Shown here piece after piece: positions 2,436 through 24,624 of a stretch of 64,000 nt of DNA. Origin of the DNA: Pseudomonas aeruginosa PAO1 (GTDB lineage: Bacteria; Pseudomonadota; Gammaproteobacteria; Pseudomonadales; Pseudomonadaceae); assembly GCF_000006765.1 (NCBI RefSeq), contig NC_002516.2. One strand, given 5' to 3'. Position 1 is the stretch's first letter; every line of letters begins with the position of its first letter. Below the pieces are notes generated by a model. That model searched no databases. It saw only the letters and a list, made by a program, of their open reading frames with translations, and had not been told where the DNA came from. The position numbers and the translations under genes are program-made.

Positions 2436-3088
2436 GCGCCGTCGAACGCGATCCGGCGGCGCAGGCGACGCTCTGGCGACAGCGGGTGTTCGAGGTGCAC
2501 GCGGCGATGTCCGCCTACGTCGCCGAGCGCCATCGGCGTGAAGACCTGGGGGACTGGGTGGCGACCAGCGCGCGGATATTCGCCGATCTGCCGGCGACCG
2601 ACGACCTGCGCGCCGAAGCCTGGCAGGCGGTGTTCTTCCGCGCCCAGGCGCTGATCGAACAGTTCATCGTCGCGCGCCCGGCGGATTACCGGCTCGACGA
2701 CTGGGCGCGCGCCACCGCGCGGATCTATCGCGCGCTGGAACCGGCGGGGCGGGGCGATCCGGCCAGCGCCGCCGACCGTCTGGCACGCCAGGCCGCGCTC
2801 TACGGTTCGCGTTTCGAGGTGCAGGCCGAGGCTGACGGGCGCGCGGTATTCCACAACCGTCACTGCGCGATCTGGGACTACCGCGAGCGCGCCCGCGCCC
2901 GAGGCGTGCCGATCACCCTGGAGTCGGCCTGCACCTATTGCACCAAGCTGCTGTCGGCGTTCGTCACCGCCAGCGATTGCCGCGCCGACTGGCGGCTCTA
3001 CGAAGAGCCGCAAGGCCACGGCTGCGTATGGACCATCACGGCGGACAGCCTCAACCAAGGAGCAGGCGTACATGAACGCGATCATTGA
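2432..3088 (+). CDS. Hypothetical protein with HC..C-x2-C motif (V4R / ATC-hydrolase-like fold suspected)
   Basis: ATGA overlap with the upstream gene, typical codon usage, 218 aa. Confidence 0.7.
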   Translation: MSAVERDPAAQATLWRQRVFEVHAAMSAYVAERHRREDLGDWVATSARIFADLPATDDLRAEAWQAVFFRAQALIEQFIVARPADYRLDDWARATARIYRALEPAGRGDPASAADRLARQAALYGSRFEVQAEADGRAVFHNRHCAIWDYRERARARGVPITLESACTYCTKLLSAFVTASDCRADWRLYEEPQGHGCVWTITADSLNQGAGVHERDH

Positions 3089-3920
3089 ACAGGCGCGCAG
3101 CCTGGACGGCTACCAGGATTCCAGCGAACTGCTGCAACGTCGCGACCAGGACTGGGTGCTCGACCGCGCCGGCATCGAGCCGCGCAGCCTGCTCGATCTC
3201 GGCTGCGGCATCGGCTCGCTGCTGCTCGGTGGCGCCCGGCGCTGGCCCGGCCTGCAACGGTTGTGGGGCATCGAACGTTCGCCGCTACGCCTGGAGCAGG
3301 CGCGCGCGCAGTTGCGCGGGGCTGGCGTCGAGGCGCGTCTGCTGGAGGGCGACCTGCTCGACCTGCCGCCGCTGGCGGAACGCTTCGAGCTGATCAGCAT
3401 GACCGCCGTGCTGCACTGGCTGTATCCCGATGAAGAGCGGCTGTTCCGGTGGGTCGCGCGGCACCTCGAGGCGCAGGGGGTATTCCTGTTCACCTCACAC
3501 CATCCGTTCGCCGAGGATGGCCTCGGCGGCGAGGACGACCTGGTCGCCCAGGCCCTGGTCGAGATGGGCCTGGCTGCGCCGGAACGGGTGGCGGCGCTCT
3601 ACGCGGAAGCCGGGCTGCTGCCGATGGGAACCCGCACCCGTGGCCGGGAGGCGTTGCGCGAACGCGTCGAACGACACTTCCGGGTCGACTCCATCGTCTC
3701 CCGCCCGGCGGTCCTGCGTGTCGCCGACTCCGCCGAATACCAGCGTTTCCACGCCGCCACCTTCGGCACCTATTTCGCACCGCTGGTGCCGGCGACGCGC
3801 CTGGAGGAATTCTTCGTCCGCCTCGGGCGGATCGCCGAGCGGCGCATGCAGGCCGACGGACAGGTCAGCGAAATCCCGGTCAGTGTCTGGCGCTGCCGGG
3901 CTCGGGAGGGCGAGGCATAA
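3072..3920 (+). CDS. Class I SAM-dependent methyltransferase
   Basis: Motif I LLDLGCGIG, EGDLLDL, TAVLHW. Confidence 0.88.
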   Translation: MNAIIEQARSLDGYQDSSELLQRRDQDWVLDRAGIEPRSLLDLGCGIGSLLLGGARRWPGLQRLWGIERSPLRLEQARAQLRGAGVEARLLEGDLLDLPPLAERFELISMTAVLHWLYPDEERLFRWVARHLEAQGVFLFTSHHPFAEDGLGGEDDLVAQALVEMGLAAPERVAALYAEAGLLPMGTRTRGREALRERVERHFRVDSIVSRPAVLRVADSAEYQRFHAATFGTYFAPLVPATRLEEFFVRLGRIAERRMQADGQVSEIPVSVWRCRAREGEA

Positions 3921-17112: not shown

Positions 17113-17332
17113 GCTCTGCGCAGGATGGATAGAACGGATTAAAGCTTGGGTGGGTTTCACGCTGGATGGTCTAGCTGCTTTTCGTGGCTGCCTCGACTTC
17201 TTGTTTCGCCGTCCCAGGCGAGTGAAATCCATGGTAGATCTCGGACCATAGGTATGCCTTAGCCAGGCGCCGGTGCTTATCGCTACCGTTGAGCCCAAGA
17301 GTCCTCCTCGGGTGGGACCGTTGCCTCCCGTA

Positions 17333-18766
17333 TCAAGCACGCATCGTCAGCATCTCTTGGGGGCCTTCGCGTAGGAGCGCTGCCAGGACTGCGAAGCCGT
17401 CAGATAACGTATTCCCCCCTCCTGGGGAATTGCTGACGCTGATTCGAATGGCCTGGGGAAGCGTACCGCGGCCCGTACTAAAGGCCTCTGCGGTGGTGAC
17501 AAGATGCTGCTGTCCGCGCATGCCTTGCTCTATTTCGATGGCGCGCCAGGGGGCTGGCACTTCTACCCAGAAATGCGGACAGCATAGATGGCTGCGATAG
17601 GTCAGGCCCTGCAGCAGGTCCACAACCAGCGCTTGGCGACGCGCGATTTCCCCTCTCTGGTATTCGAGCAGTGCGCTTGCAGTACCGTCCTCGACCCATC
17701 GGCTCGCAATCTCGAGAACCAGTGGTGTCGCCATCCAGCACGAATTGCGAAGCGCTGCTGCCATGCGACTTACCATGGATGCAGGAGCATGAACGTATCC
17801 AACCCGCAATCCTGCAGCGACCGCCTTGCTCATGCCACCGATGAGGATGCCCCGCTCAGGCAGCAGATGGCAGAGAGGGGTGGGGCGTTCGGCCATCAAT
17901 ACAGCATGGGTTTCGTCCTCGATGACGATCAAGCCGTGCTCGCGGCAGATCTTCGCGATTTCCTTCCGCCTGGCGCCTGACATCACTGCAGTGGTCGGGT
18001 TCTGGATGGTGGGTGTGCAGTACAGGGCGGTGATCCTGTTCGTGCGGCAGGCCTCTTCGAGGGCGTCGGGCAGTAGCCCCTCTTCATCCATTTCCAAGCC
18101 GAGCACCTTGATGCCCAACAGTTGCGCGGCACTGATCAGCCCAGGATAGGAGAGCTGCTCCGTTACCAGGGTGTCGCCGGCGCGCAGCATGGCCATAAGC
18201 ACGACGAGCAGACCGTGTTGGCTGCCATTGACGCACAGAATCTGCTGGTGCTCCGCTTGAAACTCACCGTGAGACAGCCATGTTGCTCCCGCTTGCCGGT
18301 GTCGGAGCAGTCCTGTGTCGGGTGTGTAGAGCATTAACTCCTGCAGGAGCTCAGGGGCCGCACTCAATTGCTGAAGGCTGCGGGAAAGCAGTTCGGTCTC
18401 ATTGCCCGGAATATGCATATTCCGGCTCATGTCGTTGCACATCTCGGTGCTGTCTACGAAATTGCGAAAGCCCGCCTCCCGAGCACGTTCTCGACCGCGG
18501 TTGCGGACGAACGTACCGTCGCCGACCCGAGCCTCAACCAGCCCCATGCGCTCCAGCTCACCATAGGCCCGGCTCACCGTGCCCGCGGTCACACCGAGCT
18601 TGTCCGCGAGGATGCGATGTGGCGGCAGCTTGACTCCCTGCCGGAGAACCCCATTGCGAATAGATTCTTCGATGCCCTGGGCCAGCCGTTTGTACTTCAG
18701 GCCGGGCCCTTCTGGTAGGAAGAATCTGAAAATTGAATCGGTGTCAATATTTGCTTTGACCGGCAT
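17333..18766 (-). CDS. MocR/GabR-family regulator (GntR wHTH + PLP aminotransferase-like domain)
   Basis: KLPPHRILADKLGVTAGTVSRAYGEL HTH; EQLSYPG, IEDE, SKAVAAGLRVG. Confidence 0.92.
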   Translation of the reverse strand: MPVKANIDTDSIFRFFLPEGPGLKYKRLAQGIEESIRNGVLRQGVKLPPHRILADKLGVTAGTVSRAYGELERMGLVEARVGDGTFVRNRGRERAREAGFRNFVDSTEMCNDMSRNMHIPGNETELLSRSLQQLSAAPELLQELMLYTPDTGLLRHRQAGATWLSHGEFQAEHQQILCVNGSQHGLLVVLMAMLRAGDTLVTEQLSYPGLISAAQLLGIKVLGLEMDEEGLLPDALEEACRTNRITALYCTPTIQNPTTAVMSGARRKEIAKICREHGLIVIEDETHAVLMAERPTPLCHLLPERGILIGGMSKAVAAGLRVGYVHAPASMVSRMAAALRNSCWMATPLVLEIASRWVEDGTASALLEYQRGEIARRQALVVDLLQGLTYRSHLCCPHFWVEVPAPWRAIEIEQGMRGQQHLVTTAEAFSTGRGTLPQAIRISVSNSPGGGNTLSDGFAVLAALLREGPQEMLTMRA

Positions 18767-18799
18767 ATTTTCTCCGAATTAACCTCAAATAAAGAGGTT
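18732..18799. promoter_or_regulatory. Two inverted repeats in the divergent mocR/eamA control region (candidate operators)
   Basis: ATTGA-N7-TCAAT at 18732-18748 and AACCTC-N7-GAGGTT at 18781-18799, within an AT-rich tract. Confidence 0.45.
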
Positions 18800-18847
18800 T
18801 GATAAGCAATAAAGGGCGTCAATCAAAGAATAACATGGGGGAAAGAC

Positions 18848-19789
18848 GTGCAACTTATGTCAATTCAAGCTCTGACTATCAACAGGCGGCAGGTACGTGT
18901 GGCCAGCCTGGTGACCGCTGTTCTATTTCTAGTGGTGTGTATCAGCTGGGGGACTACCTGGCTCGGCATCAAGATCGCCGTGGAGAGCGTGCCGCCGCTA
19001 ACTGCCGCCGGATTGCGCTTTCTGATCGCATTTCCGCTTTTCCTGCTCTTTGCGCGGCTGCGCCACGAGACGATCTTTTTCCCGCGGCGACTCCTGGCCT
19101 TCTTCGTCTTCGTGACGCTCGGCTACTTCAGCGTGCCCTACTACCTGCTGAACTATGGCGAGCAATACGTCGCTTCAGGTCTTACCGCGCTGCTGTTCAG
19201 CAGCATGCCCGTGTTCATCCTGATCTTCTCCGCGATCTTCCTGCGCGAGCGCATCTACCTGTCGCAGATCCTTGGTATTGCGATTGGCTTCGGCAGCCTG
19301 TTCATGATCATCAGGTCTCAAGGGCTGCATCTGGACTACACGGAGTTGTTAGGCGTACTTGCCATCCTGCTCGCGGCGATCATGCACGCACTCAGCTACG
19401 TCATCACCAAAAGGCAAGGTGCTGACATCGGCGTGATCACCTTCAATACGCTGCCCATTGGCATCGCCGGCTTGGGGCTGTTCATGGCCGGACTCGTGAT
19501 GGAACACCCGAACCTGTCTGCCGTCACAAGCCGATCTTGGGCTGCCCTGATCTATCTCGGTCTGGTGGCATCAGTCGGGGGATTCATCGTGTACTTCTTC
19601 CTGCTCAAGCGTTTGAGTCCCGTTGTGCTGTCGTTTGTCTTCATCATTTTCCCGGTGTTCGCCGTGATCATCGGCGCCTGGTACGAAGGGGTTGCCATCT
19701 CTCGCGAGTTGATTGGCTTCACCGTGCTCCTATTGGCTGGATTTGCCATCACCAAGCTTCCCATCGAGAAGCTGCTCGGCAGGAGGTGA
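18848..19789 (+). CDS. EamA/DMT-family exporter
   Basis: 10 TM segments; WGTTWLGIK, LNYGEQYVASGL, FPVFAVIIG; alternative start 18857. Confidence 0.88.
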   Translation: MQLMSIQALTINRRQVRVASLVTAVLFLVVCISWGTTWLGIKIAVESVPPLTAAGLRFLIAFPLFLLFARLRHETIFFPRRLLAFFVFVTLGYFSVPYYLLNYGEQYVASGLTALLFSSMPVFILIFSAIFLRERIYLSQILGIAIGFGSLFMIIRSQGLHLDYTELLGVLAILLAAIMHALSYVITKRQGADIGVITFNTLPIGIAGLGLFMAGLVMEHPNLSAVTSRSWAALIYLGLVASVGGFIVYFFLLKRLSPVVLSFVFIIFPVFAVIIGAWYEGVAISRELIGFTVLLLAGFAITKLPIEKLLGRR

Positions 19790-19790
19790 C

Positions 19791-20249
19791 ATGAATACGA
19801 ACGTGTTGACCGAGCATGCATTGAGCGTGATCTACAGACACGCCTGCAGGACCTATCCAAGGGAATGCTGCGGATTCGTTCTCGCCGATGCAAAAGTGAA
19901 AGAGGGTACGAACATCCAGGATGAACTGCACATGGCTGACCCCCGGAGGTACCCACGCACGGCCGCCAACGGGTACACGTTTTCCGTGACGGATACCGTA
20001 TTCCTCAACAGCAGCTTCAAGACGTGCAGCCCGGTATCCGTCATCTACCACTCCCACCCGGACGTCGGTGCCTACTTCAGCCGGGAGGATATCGACAAGG
20101 CATTGTATGCCGGGGAGCCAATGCTGCCGGTCGACTACCTGGTTGTTGATGTGGCCGCCGGCAACGTTCGCGGCGCAAAACTGTTTGCCTGGCGCAACGG
20201 ACGCTTTGAATGCACACGAGAGTTCGGGCCATCGAGCCAGGACGAGTAG
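19791..20249 (+). CDS. JAB/MPN+ (Mov34, Mec+-like) Zn metalloprotease
   Basis: YPRECCG glutamate and complete JAMM motif H-S-H-x7-S-x2-D (HSHPDVGAYFSRED); AGGAGG RBS. Confidence 0.9.
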   Translation: MNTNVLTEHALSVIYRHACRTYPRECCGFVLADAKVKEGTNIQDELHMADPRRYPRTAANGYTFSVTDTVFLNSSFKTCSPVSVIYHSHPDVGAYFSREDIDKALYAGEPMLPVDYLVVDVAAGNVRGAKLFAWRNGRFECTREFGPSSQDE

Positions 20250-20271
20250 ACATCTGGCAAGGAGCTGAAAA

Positions 20272-21690
20272 GTGAAGACGGTAATTTTTCCGGAAGTACT
20301 GGTACGGGCCGCCCAACTGGAAGGCGGGCGCCTGGAGGGAGCGGGCTTGACGGTTGGCGAGCTGCTGGCAGGCCTTGCCAGGAAGCATCCTTCATTACTC
20401 GGGCACCTGTATTACGAAAACGGTCAATTGAAAGAACACTTCCTGCTGACCCACAAAGGTTCGCTAGTCAATCTGGATGGCGAGCTTTCCGATGGAGATG
20501 AAGTCGAAGTCATGCTCGCGACATCTGGCGGTTCTGGCGTTGAAGCGTTGAGCGACGAAGAAGTTCAACGCTACGTTCGCCACATCACGTTGCCAGGCGT
20601 TGGCAGGGAAGGCCAGCAGCGCCTGAAGCAGGCCAGGGTGCTGATAATCGGAACGGGCGGCCTGGGTTCGCCCGCTTGCCTTTATCTGGCCGCAGCAGGA
20701 GTGGGCACCATCGGGCTGGTTGACTTTGACGTGGTGGAGTCGAGCAATCTCCAGCGCCAGGTCGTCCATGGCTATAGCACGCTCGGTATGCCGAAGGTTG
20801 AGTCCGCCCAGCGCCGGATGCAGGACCTGAACCCCTACATTGAAGTCGTAACCCACCGTTACGCCATCGACGCGGACAATGCGCAGTCACTGATTCAGAG
20901 CTATGACCTGGTATTGGATGGCACCGACAACTTCGCCACACGTTACTTGGTCAACGCGGTTTGCGCCAAGCTCGGAAAACCACTCGTCTTTGGCGCGATC
21001 TATCGGTTCGAAGGTCAGGTCAGCGTCTTCAATCTGGAGGGAGGCCCCTGCTACCAATGTCTCTTCCCGAACAATCCCCCGCCTGAGATGGCTCCAAGCT
21101 GTAACGCAGGGGGAGTTATTGGTGTGCTGCCTGGAGTGATTGGCCTGCTGCAGGCAACCGAGGCGGTGAAGGCCCTCGTCGGCCTGGGCAAGTCCCTATC
21201 AGGCAGACTTCTTCGATTCGACGCGCTGCTCATGCACTTCAATGAAGTGAAGTTCAATCGGCGCGACGATTGTCCGGCCTGCGGCAAAACCGCTGCAGAG
21301 AATCCCCGCCACTGGAGGGAGGGATTGCTCTGCCAGGCAAGCGCGGCACCGTCGCAACGACTCGACGACGATCGCTATATCGATCCCGGCTGCCTGTTGC
21401 AGTTGATGAAATCCAACAGCGAAAACTATGCCCTTCTGGATGTACGCGACGCGGGCGAGCTCGAAGTGTGCCAGTTGCCGGGGATCGTCCACGTTCCCTT
21501 GAACGAACTCGCCAGCCATTTCGCCAATCTCGACTTCAGTAAGCGCTACATCCTCGTGTGCTACGCCGGCACTCGTGCCGAACGCGCGGCCATACAGCTC
21601 ATGGGGGCAGGGTTCTCCAACGTCCAAGTGCTCGATGGCGGCATGAAGCGATGGGCGAAAGAGATAGAGCAGCACATGCCGATGTACTGA
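20272..21690 (+). CDS. Fusion of MoaD/ThiS/CysO-like ubiquitin-fold sulfur carrier + E1-like adenylyltransferase + rhodanese (MoeZ-like)
   Basis: N-terminal ~87 aa beta-grasp-like domain ending TSGG; GTGGLG, SNLQRQ, DGTDN, CYQC/CPAC Zn pairs, PSC; rhodanese LDVR...CYAGTRA. Confidence 0.88.
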   Translation: MKTVIFPEVLVRAAQLEGGRLEGAGLTVGELLAGLARKHPSLLGHLYYENGQLKEHFLLTHKGSLVNLDGELSDGDEVEVMLATSGGSGVEALSDEEVQRYVRHITLPGVGREGQQRLKQARVLIIGTGGLGSPACLYLAAAGVGTIGLVDFDVVESSNLQRQVVHGYSTLGMPKVESAQRRMQDLNPYIEVVTHRYAIDADNAQSLIQSYDLVLDGTDNFATRYLVNAVCAKLGKPLVFGAIYRFEGQVSVFNLEGGPCYQCLFPNNPPPEMAPSCNAGGVIGVLPGVIGLLQATEAVKALVGLGKSLSGRLLRFDALLMHFNEVKFNRRDDCPACGKTAAENPRHWREGLLCQASAAPSQRLDDDRYIDPGCLLQLMKSNSENYALLDVRDAGELEVCQLPGIVHVPLNELASHFANLDFSKRYILVCYAGTRAERAAIQLMGAGFSNVQVLDGGMKRWAKEIEQHMPMY

Positions 21691-21708
21691 ACCATAGGCA
21701 GGGAAAGC

Positions 21709-22626
21709 ATGATCTACGATTCGCTACTCGATTTAATTGGCGGGACGCCGGTGATACGGCTGAGCAAATTGTCTGCTCGCCTGGGGGTGAGCGTATTCGC
21801 CAAGCTGGAATCCTTCAATCCAGGAGGAAGTCATAAGGCGCGTATCGCGCTCTGGATGATTCTGGATGCCGAACGCAAAGGAATCCTGGTGCGCGGGAAA
21901 GGGCAGACCATTCTCGAGCCGAGCGGGGGAAATACGGGGATTGGACTGGCAATGGCGGGGAACATCCTGGGGTACCGCGTGTCCCTGGTGGTTCCCGACA
22001 ACTACAGCCCTGACAAGAGACAATTGCTCGAGCTGTATGGCGCTCACGTCGTGCTGTCGGATAGCAGAAAAGGGAACAACTCGCATGGCGAGCTGGCAAT
22101 CCAGATACTGCTGGAACATCCGGAGTTCGTCATGCTCAACCAGCAGCGCAATCCAGCCAACCCGCAAGCCCATCGCGAAGCTACAGCCCTGGAAATCCTG
22201 AGGGACTTTGCAGGCCAGCCACCCCCGGACTTCTTCTTCGCTGGCATTGGAACTGGTGGACATATCACGGGTGTTGGAGAGGTGCTGAGGAACCACTGGC
22301 CGGATATGGCCATCTATGGCGTGCAGCCAGAGCAGTGCGACTTGCTCGACGATAGGCACGCATCGCATGAGATTCAGGGACTTTCCATTGGTATCGTGCC
22401 GGAAGTCTGCAACCTCGGCATTGTTACTGGCATGGTCGGGGTGTCGAAATCTGCCTGCTTGTCGATGATCCGGGAAGTCCTGCAAAACGACTCTGTGAGC
22501 ATGGGGTTGTCCTCCGCAGCCAACCTGGTCGCGGTGCTGAACATGGCATCTGCCATGCCGTCAGGCGCTCGTGTACTGACGATGATCTACGATGGCGTCG
22601 AGTCATACATGGACGCTTTTCGATGA
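21709..22626 (+). CDS. PLP-dependent cysteine synthase family enzyme (CysM-like, divergent)
   Basis: AKLESFNPGGSHKAR PLP-Lys, GNTG, GIGTGG, RQLLELYGA. Confidence 0.88.
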   Translation: MIYDSLLDLIGGTPVIRLSKLSARLGVSVFAKLESFNPGGSHKARIALWMILDAERKGILVRGKGQTILEPSGGNTGIGLAMAGNILGYRVSLVVPDNYSPDKRQLLELYGAHVVLSDSRKGNNSHGELAIQILLEHPEFVMLNQQRNPANPQAHREATALEILRDFAGQPPPDFFFAGIGTGGHITGVGEVLRNHWPDMAIYGVQPEQCDLLDDRHASHEIQGLSIGIVPEVCNLGIVTGMVGVSKSACLSMIREVLQNDSVSMGLSSAANLVAVLNMASAMPSGARVLTMIYDGVESYMDAFR

Positions 22627-22659
22627 AGTTGTAGAGCAGAGCACGGCGATAACGCTTGC

Positions 22660-23403
22660 ATGGTCGAAATGAGGTCGCATGCGATGGACAAACTGGTAGG
22701 TAATCTGATGCGCGCGGCATTGATGGAGTGCTGCTCACCCCAACTGGTGGAGCGGATAGTCGCTCATTCGATGTTCGAAGAAGCCAGACGTTGGTGCGAG
22801 GAAGACCTGCAGGCATTCGCCAGCAAGGATCCAGCCGCACAGGGACGGACATCCGACATTGCGTTTGGCTACAGCTCGTTCAAGGCAGTGCTGCACTACC
22901 GGCTTTCCCACATGCTGTGTCTGCGAAGCACATCTGAAGGCGATCCTGAGAGAGCGTTGGAGGCTACCGCGCTCCTGGTCTCCTCTCGTGGAAAGCTCCT
23001 GTCGGGCGCGGAAATCCACCCAAGATGCAAGATTGGCAGTCGATTCATCCTGGACCATGGGCATGGCACGGTCATTGGCGAGACAGCGGTAATCGGTGAT
23101 GACTGTTACATCCTCGGAGGTGTGGTATTGGGGGCAACTGGCATATCGGCTAATCCCGCCGGTAAGCGTCACCCCACCATAGGGAGCCGCGTCCAAATCG
23201 GGGCCTTCACGCGTGTACTGGGTGACATCGCTATCGGCGACGATGTGTTTGTCGGTCCGCATTGTGTCATCAAGGACGACATCCCTGTCGGTTCAGTCGT
23301 AACCCTGCGTTCTGAACTACAGGTCATCCGAGGCCCCCACATAGTTCAGCAACTACAGCCGGCAGCCACGCAGACCCAAATTCAACCAATGGAGGCATCA
23401 TGA
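22660..23403 (+). CDS. Serine O-acetyltransferase-like hexapeptide acyltransferase
   Basis: AEIHPRCKIG, DHGHGTVIGETAVIG, KRHPTIG left-handed beta-helix motifs. Confidence 0.85.
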   Translation: MVEMRSHAMDKLVGNLMRAALMECCSPQLVERIVAHSMFEEARRWCEEDLQAFASKDPAAQGRTSDIAFGYSSFKAVLHYRLSHMLCLRSTSEGDPERALEATALLVSSRGKLLSGAEIHPRCKIGSRFILDHGHGTVIGETAVIGDDCYILGGVVLGATGISANPAGKRHPTIGSRVQIGAFTRVLGDIAIGDDVFVGPHCVIKDDIPVGSVVTLRSELQVIRGPHIVQQLQPAATQTQIQPMEAS

Positions 23404-24134
23404 CGCAGACCGCCTCCCTTTTTCTCCAGGACTCCTACCGGGAAGAGTGTTTGGCGAGAATCACCGATGTCGTTGAAGATGGCCTGCTGCTCGACCAGAC
23501 CGTTTTCTATCCCCAGGGGGGTGGCCAGGCTGGAGACAGTGGTTGGCTGACGCTGGCTGATGGCACGCGGCTCCGGATCGCCGATACACGCAAGGGGACA
23601 GAAGCAGGTGCTGGCAGGGATGCCATCCTGCATATCCCAGCTGAAGGCCAGGCAACCGTTCTCCGAGCAATGAAGCCTGGCGAGGTGGTTCTTGCGCAGA
23701 TCGATTGGGTGCGTCGTTACCGGCACATGCGACTGCATACCGCAGCGCACATGCTCTGTGCTGTCCTGCCCTATCCGGTCAATGGGTGCAGCATCACTGA
23801 TGAGCATGCGCGCCTGGACTTCGTGACGAGTGAACCGCTGTCCCGCGAGGCCATTGATAGCGCCTTGGCGGCAATGGTCGAGGCAGCACATCCGGTTTCG
23901 ATCGACACCATGAGCGACGATGCACTGCGGGCTAGGCCAGATCTGGTGCGCACCATGAGTGTCCAACCTCCGATGGGCGCCGGGCAGGTTCGGTTGGTGA
24001 GTATTAAAGACACCGACCTGCAGCCTTGCGGTGGAACCCATGTGGCGAATACCGAAGAAGTTGGGGTGGTGCGCGTTTCCAAGATGGAGAAGAAATCAGC
24101 GCGCACCCGTAGGGTGGTACTGGTACTGGGTTGA
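23400..24134 (+). CDS. AlaX (AlaXp-M) stand-alone alanyl-tRNA editing protein
   Basis: LDQTVFYPQGGGQAGD, MRLHTAAH (HxxxH) and QPCGGTH (CxxxH) Zn motifs; ATGA overlap. Confidence 0.9.
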   Translation: MTQTASLFLQDSYREECLARITDVVEDGLLLDQTVFYPQGGGQAGDSGWLTLADGTRLRIADTRKGTEAGAGRDAILHIPAEGQATVLRAMKPGEVVLAQIDWVRRYRHMRLHTAAHMLCAVLPYPVNGCSITDEHARLDFVTSEPLSREAIDSALAAMVEAAHPVSIDTMSDDALRARPDLVRTMSVQPPMGAGQVRLVSIKDTDLQPCGGTHVANTEEVGVVRVSKMEKKSARTRRVVLVLG

Positions 24135-24225
24135 GCGACTACCGTCGACATGGCCGTCGGTTTCCCATTCTACGCCACAGGTCACCCTCGCCACGCCCGG
24201 CAGCTCCATGCAATGCCAGAGGGCC

Positions 24226-24624
24226 TCAGGCCGGCAACAACGGCCGACAGGCTTCGACGAAGCGCCGGCAGGCACCCGCACATTCGCGCTCCAGCGGCTC
24301 GTCGCCATCGCAACGCTCGGCGCATGCCAGGGCATAGCGCGCCGCCAGCTCGCAGGCGGCCGGCGCCCATGGGCTGCGGCGCTCCAGCAGTAGGGCGGCG
24401 AGGCGGCAGAGGTCGGCGCAGTCGCCGGCGTGCTGGCGTTGTTCCCTGCTGGACTCGGTGCAGAGCGCCAGGTAGCGCTCGCACGCGCGGATGCAGGCCT
24501 GGGCTGCGAGCCGGCAGCGCTCTTCCGGCGCCTGGGCGGCGGCACCGCCGAGCAGGGCGTCGGCGTCGGTTTCCAGCAGGGAACCGGGGTCTTCGTTTCC
24601 GGGATCGTTGATGGCGCGGGTCAT
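24226..24624 (-). CDS. Cys-rich four-helix-bundle protein (DUF326 / Csp3-like copper storage)
   Basis: Repeated CxxxC and CxxC motifs in helical sequence; AGGAGG RBS. Confidence 0.7.
   Translation of the reverse strand: MTRAINDPGNEDPGSLLETDADALLGGAAAQAPEERCRLAAQACIRACERYLALCTESSREQRQHAGDCADLCRLAALLLERRSPWAPAACELAARYALACAERCDGDEPLERECAGACRRFVEACRPLLPA

Follow-up and report, generated by a model that had tools for sequence, protein, structure and literature searches.

The stretch analyzed here (the window) comprises 64,000 nt of Pseudomonas aeruginosa PAO1 DNA (NC_002516.2), and at about 17.3-24.2 kb it carries a module of seven genes, a MocR-type regulator on the minus strand and six plus-strand genes with intergenic gaps of -4 to 33 nt (Table 1). 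The gene of interest is an open reading frame (ORF) of 472 aa that joins a beta-grasp sulfur-carrier domain to an E1-type adenylation domain and a rhodanese domain, and it is preceded by a gene for a JAMM metalloprotease (JAB). Judged by its neighbors it is the PA2103 locus, as the gene order and functions in the window match those described for PA2100-PA2106 in published papers, where PA2103 is annotated as 'MoeB'. The comparisons below suggest that the ORF is probably a precursor of two proteins of the same pathway, the carrier (residues 1-87) and a MoeZ-type E1-rhodanese (about 88-472), which would be freed by cleavage.

A first-pass annotation, made from the sequence alone, had described the N-terminal domain as ending in T-S-G86-G87 and running straight into the E1, and a direct reading of the DNA agrees: T84 (ACA, 20521-23), S85 (TCT, 20524-26), G86 (GGC, 20527-29) and G87 (GGT, 20530-32) are followed by S88 (TCT, 20533-35) and then, in frame and without a stop codon, by G-V-E-A-L-S-D-E-E-V-Q-R-Y. 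As encoded, G87 is peptide-bonded to S88 and has no free C-terminal carboxylate, and because no stop codon follows, such a carboxylate is obtainable by proteolysis alone. The ORF starts with GTG, with an AAGGAG motif (20259-20264) 7 nt upstream. Pfam places ThiS at residues 19-87, ThiF at 101-335 and Rhodanese at 382-463; the ThiS match (26.5 bits, cutoff 22.5) runs to the final profile position (76 of 76), which falls on G87. Modeled alone with AlphaFold2, residues 1-87 gave a predicted local distance difference test (pLDDT) score of 92.9, and the top Foldseek matches of the model were SAMP1 and the CysO proteins of Amycolatopsis and Mycobacterium tuberculosis, with template modeling (TM) scores of 0.81-0.82 (0.81 for the CysO structures 3dwg_C and 3dwm_A). 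A Thermus MoaD-related protein was also among the best (about 0.8), and matches to SAMP1, CysO and MoaD spanned 0.72-0.82. The domain has both the beta-grasp fold (about 65-95 residues) and the terminal Gly-Gly (GG) of ThiS/MoaD/CysO carriers. Residue 92 aligns to residue 3 of Escherichia coli MoeB (1jw9_B), which puts the start of the E1 domain some 3-5 residues past G87, with hardly any spacer between the two domains. The full-length AlphaFold model has two confident domains and, between them, residues 85-93 at pLDDT < 50, and the junction is predicted to be flexible. Also as first described, the operon holds no separate MoaD/ThiS gene: no plausible ORF of the operon ends in GG, thiamine genes are absent from both operon and window, and a carrier-family hidden Markov model (HMM) run against the six-frame translation of the whole window matched the fusion ORF only.

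A lack of GG conservation in fused homologues had been named beforehand as refuting the cleavage hypothesis; the hypothesis came through this check. Relatives (n = 120) were gathered by a search seeded on residues 1-110, and every member carries a fused carrier. GG is present at the junction in 119, the remaining one being without the motif used for scoring. A curated alignment of 44 sequences, 55-85% identical to the query, shows little or no variation across L82-A-T-S-G-G87: columns L82, A83, G86 and G87 are invariant, positions 88-92 show entropies of 0.7-2.8 bits and indels of up to 7 residues, and conservation picks up again at L93. An invariant GG followed by a variable linker is the pattern expected of a cleavage site recognized from the carrier side only, and judged by this alignment the junction did not arise by chance. 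The idea that the fusion results from a sequencing frameshift or a lost stop was rejected in view of the fused architecture of all 120 relatives, which span Pseudomonas, Paraburkholderia, Bordetella, Rhodopseudomonas and metagenome-assembled genomes (MAGs), and the 100%-identical cluster of the fusion comprises 394 member sequences. Routes to a free carrier without proteolysis were likewise rejected: in the alternative frame a TGA occurs only several codons later and the end would not be GG, and a conserved internal start is not supported, residue 82 being Leu in many relatives and no conserved Met following the GG. A scan of contigs with narrow peptide patterns returned four fused loci, its other eight hits being ordinary MoeB genes. 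Three P. aeruginosa database entries (P0001, P0005 and P0006) are shortened to 271, 293 and 298 aa, and may reflect pseudogene alleles or miscalls in particular strains.

A word-free HMMER search (residues 1-90) revealed free-standing relatives of 86-92 residues in which the last residue aligns with G87. Two of these, from metagenomes, were traced to their contigs. On L016/L017, the genes run acetyltransferase, EamA and JAB, then an 87-aa carrier ending in AAAGG, ThiF and PALP, where the ThiF protein is 251 aa long, lacks a rhodanese domain and begins two nucleotides past the carrier stop (L016 1899-3355). The other (L015) has the order MocR, EamA, intact JAB, an 87-aa carrier ending in LLATSGG, PALP, acetyltransferase and AlaX, so that JAB and a free carrier (2650-3469) occur there with no E1 gene at all. 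By gene content, the same pathway also occurs in a form whose carrier is separate from the E1, and because the free 87-aa orthologues stop exactly at the aligned Gly-Gly, G87 appears to be the natural functional C-terminus. Further representatives end at GG or 2-4 residues past it (for the latter, GGYS in P0135, GGMGCR in P0132 and GGAA in P0139). Relatives of 100-130 aa (P0121, P0122, P0124, P0125 and P0127) look like frameshifted or contig-end fragments of fusions, as opposed to naturally free carriers, and were not used as evidence.

These orthologues bear on the possibility that the beta-grasp domain is never released and acts as a docking, regulatory or auto-inhibitory ubiquitin-like (Ubl) domain, with the E1 charging a carrier encoded elsewhere, such as MoaD or ThiS. 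A Ubl domain N-terminal to a ThiF-family E1, for which such a function has been proposed, is known from the Campylobacter jejuni-type Ubl-ThiF fusions of Iyer, Burroughs and Aravind (2006), which co-occur with free ThiS in thiamine operons and so, according to these authors, must have another role, and MoeZR of M. tuberculosis serves more than one carrier. In the present case, however, the operon offers no free carrier, the GG, which is invariant, lines up with the point where free orthologues from the same operon type end, there would be no reason to keep L-A-T-S-G-G in a domain that is never adenylated, and the obligatory JAB partner would be left unexplained. Permanent attachment is for these reasons very improbable, and release of the carrier after G87 is the reading followed below.

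The upstream gene encodes an intact protease, as the first-pass annotation had stated: its zinc site is complete (E25 and H87-S-H89-PDVGAYF-S97-RE-D100, that is, H-x-H-x7-S-x2-D), the Prok-JAB match scores 68.6 bits against a cutoff of 25, and the sole PDB sequence match is 2kcq, a Mov34/MPN/PAD-1 protein. The nine two-gene loci examined (among them the window, L001-L004, L018, L019 and a Rhodopseudomonas contig) all have the JAB gene directly upstream of the fusion, and the two genes often overlap by 4 nt. Of the 120 relatives, 65 instead have JAB fused in frame ahead of the carrier; most of these belong to fluorescens-group Pseudomonas, and the result is a JAB-carrier-E1-rhodanese protein of 619-620 aa in the same operon (yamanorum, brenneri and others; L013 6001-7860). 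A cut at the GG of these triple fusions would leave the carrier attached to the protease. Every fused locus examined thus had JAB either adjacent or fused, and from this context JAB most likely cleaves the fusion after G87. The earlier claim that JAB must do so is supported by comparison (the GG, the free orthologues and the JAB linkage) as the most likely reading for both the cut and its agent. The 1:1 carrier:E1 stoichiometry and the proteolytic on-switch suggested along with it stay conjectural.

Linear carrier fusions that are opened at such a bond are known from molybdopterin synthesis. MoaX, the MoaD-MoaE fusion of M. tuberculosis, is cut between Gly82 and Ser83 and needs this cleavage for activity, the JAMM protein DR0402 of Deinococcus radiodurans cleaves the MoaD-MoaE fusion DR2607 and exposes a C-terminal Gly, and HvJAMM1 cleaves SAMP1-MoaE in Haloferax. 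As here, the carrier is in frame with a pathway partner and is cut after Gly-Gly, and in MoaX the GG is followed by Ser exactly as in the present ORF. The partner there is the downstream acceptor MoaE, whereas here it is the upstream activating E1, and the protease of those systems is neither adjacent to nor fused with the precursor. A housekeeping protease, or even the fusion itself, might also free the carrier after G87, with JAB serving only as a product hydrolase like Mec+ of M. tuberculosis. The protease that cleaves MoaX was reported as unidentified, and since JAB is kept where the carrier is free-standing, processing is not its only job; but the carrier-GG-Cys bond of a product and the carrier-GG-Ser bond of the precursor are the same bond type on the same carrier, a JAMM protein does cut a linear MoaD-MoaE fusion in D. 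radiodurans, and more than half of the relatives have JAB fused in frame to the precursor. A separate protease is therefore an unlikely explanation, and cleavage by JAB is preferred. Because JAB is kept, intact, in operons whose carrier is already free (L015 and L016), it must also act beyond precursor processing, and by analogy with Mec+ this second role is probably the hydrolysis of a carrier-amino-acid adduct. The suggestion, already made from the sequence, that JAB acts again in product release gains support from these operons.

The E1 domain matches the structures of MoeB (1jw9_B), Uba4 and ThiF, and carries the motifs GTGGLG (127-132, the nucleotide loop), LQRQ (160-163), DGTDN (216-220), CYQC (260-263) and CPAC (334-337). 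Invariant among the relatives are G127-x-G-G-x-G132, R162, D216/D219, C260-x2-C263, C334-x2-C337 and C277, the cross-over-loop Cys, as well as C430 and R435 of the rhodanese active-site loop C430-Y-A-G-T-R435. A ThiF-family Rossmann domain with its nucleotide loop, catalytic Arg/Asp residues and two CxxC zinc motifs, followed by a rhodanese Cys-x4-Arg loop, is the composition of MoeZ/MoeBR/Uba4-type proteins. The protein nevertheless scores below the MoeB/MoeZ equivalog cutoffs (NF006444, 430.5 vs. 449; NF005646, 402 vs. 633; NF005902 MoeZ, 395 vs. 647) and passes only the subfamily model NF004281 (316 vs. 266). Judged by these scores the fusion E1 is a paralogue and not the housekeeping MoeB of the usual annotation; confirmation of the cleavage would correct that annotation for PA2103.

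An acyl-adenylate forms only on a free carboxylate, so the carrier would have to be released by hydrolysis of the G87-S88 bond. Translation would yield the 51.2-kDa precursor, and the adjacent JAMM protease, recognizing the beta-grasp body and the L-A-T-S-G-G tail and largely indifferent to what comes next, would cut between G87 and S88 (nt 20532 and 20533) and release a carrier fragment of 9.27 kDa (9.14 kDa if Met1 is lost) from one of 41.98 kDa (computed masses). The E1 domain could then adenylate the freed G87, and a persulfide on C430 of the rhodanese would turn the adenylate into a thiocarboxylate. The CysK/M-like pyridoxal phosphate (PLP) enzyme encoded downstream may add the carrier sulfur to aminoacrylate derived from O-acetylserine, which would be supplied by the acetyltransferase of the operon, and an S-to-N acyl shift would give a carrier-Gly-Gly-Cys adduct. 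The same JAMM protease would finally hydrolyze the GG-Cys bond of this adduct, giving cysteine or a close analogue and regenerating the carrier. The domain assignments, catalytic motifs, junction conservation, free orthologues, synteny and JAB linkage are observed, and they support cleavage of the precursor; that the cut takes place, which protease makes it, every chemical step and what is produced are inferred by analogy with characterized systems.

The closest model for this scheme is the Mec+/CysO/CysM/MoeZR system of M. tuberculosis, in which MoeZR thiocarboxylates CysO on the last Gly of its GG, the thiocarboxylate adds to aminoacrylate, and Mec+ cleaves the adduct of CysO with cysteine by hydrolysis, which frees Cys. 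Counterparts of all four proteins are found here, namely a CysO-like carrier, a JAMM protease, a CysK/M-family PLP enzyme and an E1-rhodanese, and the first three, the set characteristic of Mec+/CysO/CysM-type systems, occur in one operon. The two systems differ in that CysO is free and moeZR unlinked in M. tuberculosis, whereas here the carrier is the N-terminus of the E1; the M. tuberculosis pathway uses O-phosphoserine, while the serine acetyltransferase here implies O-acetylserine; and the EamA, AlaX-like and MocR genes are extra in the present module, whose PLP enzyme is not specifically like CysM of M. tuberculosis.

In the QbsE/QbsD system of thioquinolobactin synthesis and the HcyS/HcyD system of Wolinella methionine synthesis, a JAMM protease trims a short extension and exposes Gly-Gly before the E1 acts. 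The extension of these carriers is 1-2 residues long, compared with a 385-residue enzyme here, and the relatives of the present carrier that end 2-4 residues past the GG resemble them in this respect. Eukaryotic ubiquitin precursors are likewise linear beta-grasp fusions whose Gly-Gly is exposed by a dedicated peptidase before the E1, and the PA2103 ORF has the corresponding parts, a Gly-Gly followed by an in-frame polypeptide and a cognate peptidase at hand. Here, however, the partner is the E1 itself, the process would be sulfur transfer and not protein tagging, and there is no E2 or E3; the resemblance is one of analogy and of distant homology of parts, not of membership. If the proposal is true, the locus would offer a compact bacterial parallel to the processing of ubiquitin precursors, and a simple setting in which to study JAMM recognition of a Ubl tail.

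Some of what was first thought new had been anticipated. Iyer, Burroughs and Aravind (2006) described an operon class (4c) of ThiS/MoaD, E1-rhodanese, JAB and cysteine synthase genes, listed P. aeruginosa and R. palustris among its holders, and predicted that JAB may cleave off a fused ThiS/MoaD to give a free C-terminus, and the novelty of the observation was to that degree overstated. The locus belongs to class 4c, and a Rhodopseudomonas homologue (P0114) was found here too. The accessible text and table of that purely computational work do not state a carrier-E1 fusion for the class, and make no mention of the JAB-carrier-E1 triple fusion, the acetyltransferase, AlaX, EamA and MocR genes, or the split orthologues. 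The literature searched held no study of a fusion between a carrier and its own E1, which appears not to have been previously characterized. The conceptual advance is limited, since both the class and the idea of processing go back to the 2006 predictions and cleavage after Gly-Gly is established for MoaD-MoaE fusions. If cleavage is confirmed, PA2103 would be the first characterized case of a sulfur carrier and its own E1 arising from one precursor, and many Pseudomonas would make the carrier precursor with its own protease as well.

Table 1. Features of the PA2103 module in the 64-kb window.
Feature	Coordinates	Strand	Basis
MocR-type regulator, PA2100-like	17333..18766	-	Pfam GntR and Aminotran_1_2; transcribed divergently
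EamA-family drug/metabolite transporter, first operon gene	18848..19789	+	Pfam EamA, two repeats; syntenic in relatives
JAMM/MPN+ (Prok-JAB) metalloprotease, 152 aa	19791..20249	+	Pfam Prok-JAB, E=5e-19
Whole fusion ORF (carrier, E1, rhodanese), 472 aa plus stop	20272..21690	+	
CysO/SAMP1/MoaD-like beta-grasp sulfur-carrier domain, residues 1-87, ending T-S-G86-G87	20272..20532	+	
Codons G86-G87	20527..20532	+	Direct DNA reading; invariant columns
Variable junction, residues 88-92 (S-G-V-E-A)	20533..20547	+	Entropy, indels, low pLDDT
MoeB/ThiF/MoeZ-type E1 adenylation domain, residues 93-335	20548..21276	+	Pfam ThiF, E=6e-84
Rhodanese sulfurtransferase domain, residues 382-463	21415..21660	+	Pfam Rhodanese, E=1e-14
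CysK/CysM-family PLP enzyme, PA2104-like	21709..22626	+	Pfam PALP
Serine O-acetyltransferase-like hexapeptide transferase, PA2105-like	22660..23403	+	Pfam Hexapep
AlaXM-like (alanyl-tRNA editing domain) protein, last module gene	23400..24134	+	Pfam tRNA_SAD and tRNA-synt_2c

The PLP enzyme scores 271 bits with the NCBIfam cysKM model (cutoff 344), and its PDB matches are cysteine synthases, DcsD and, at 1e-47, CysM of M. tuberculosis. The acetyltransferase scores 141 bits with cysE (cutoff 210); both enzymes, like the E1, fall below the curated cutoffs of the housekeeping equivalogs. O-acetylserine is suggested as the substrate because the operon carries a serine acetyltransferase. The acetyltransferase-like protein has 247 aa here and a similar length in Paraburkholderia, against 319-348 aa in most other relatives, where it has an extra C-terminal region. 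In every relative inspected, the module closes with a gene for the AlaXM-like protein (NCBIfam AlaXM, 186 bits, cutoff 300), a conserved position; in the window its start overlaps the acetyltransferase stop by 4 nt. The protein might protect against mischarging with serine or with the pathway product. Nothing relevant was found in the literature on AlaX-cysteine-synthase clusters. At the other end of the module, 1 nt separates the EamA gene from the JAB gene, and the MocR-type regulator (NCBIfam EhuR-like, 452 bits, below the cutoff of 480) is syntenic in every relative seen.

This gene content also speaks to whether the released carrier is mainly a protein modifier, attached to lysines in the manner of sampylation or urmylation, with JAB as the deconjugating enzyme. 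SAMP1 is the closest structural match of the carrier, weak NCBIfam matches to SAMP1, a SAMP-activating E1 and a desampylase were obtained, and the possibility was raised for JAB-linked operons by Iyer et al. (2006). Set against this are the lack of an E2-like gene and the strict synteny of the rhodanese, with its invariant active-site Cys, the CysK/M-like PLP enzyme and the serine acetyltransferase, which points to sulfur transfer to a small molecule. A modifier function is accordingly thought highly improbable, and the sulfur-carrier role is retained.

A number of points weigh against the scheme of precursor cleavage and cysteine formation proposed above. Part of the homologue set came from a word-based search seeded in this very region, so that conservation may be inflated, but the word-free HMMER search gave the same conservation picture. 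Two short database relatives (P0130 and P0133), which may be degenerate or wrongly called, have no GG. Generic CysK structures score better with the PLP enzyme than does CysM of M. tuberculosis, to which it shows no specific closeness, and because it also falls below the cysK/cysM cutoffs it is uncertain which nucleophile it uses and what it makes. A simple cysteine pathway would have no need of the conserved AlaX-like and EamA genes, and the literature yielded no experimental or proteomic evidence of cleavage, either for PA2103 or for any carrier-E1 fusion. As the module begins with an exporter and ends with an AlaX-like protein, its product may not be plain cysteine. A broader and rather doubtful extension is that the module is a mobile, self-contained cassette in which one JAMM protease would both mature a protease-carrier-E1-rhodanese polyprotein and turn the carrier over, the 619-aa relatives being single self-processing chains. 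The product would be a thiol amino acid or analogue other than ordinary cysteine, exported by EamA, sensed by MocR and kept out of translation by the AlaX-like protein.

Published work on PA2102-PA2104, as far as found, consists of transcriptome tables and passing mentions. PA2100-PA2103 were induced by N-acetylcysteine in a published transcriptome, and PA2101-PA2104 and PA2106 appear together in a published differential-expression table of the RpoH regulon, which speaks for co-expression; these listings are consistent with one operon that responds to thiol or proteotoxic stress. A scan for promoters and terminators gave fewer hits in the operon than in shuffled sequence. P. aeruginosa cysK cysM double mutants show residual late-onset growth, for which the authors suspected PA2104, and the pathway proposed here, if true, would be a candidate source of this growth.

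The module (17300-24150) is an island of 55-60% GC between flanks of about 68-75% GC, PA2100-PA2103 are listed in a paper as having no PA14 orthologue, and nearly unchanged copies of the module occur in Paraburkholderia, other Pseudomonas, a Granulosicoccaceae MAG and Rhodopseudomonas. Taken together, the low GC, the missing PA14 orthologue and the near-unchanged copies suggest that the module was horizontally acquired and spread. The Rhodopseudomonas copy adjoins transposase fragments. Just beyond the low-GC island, on the opposite strand to the operon, lies a Cys-rich DUF326 ORF of 132 aa (24226-24624, minus strand).

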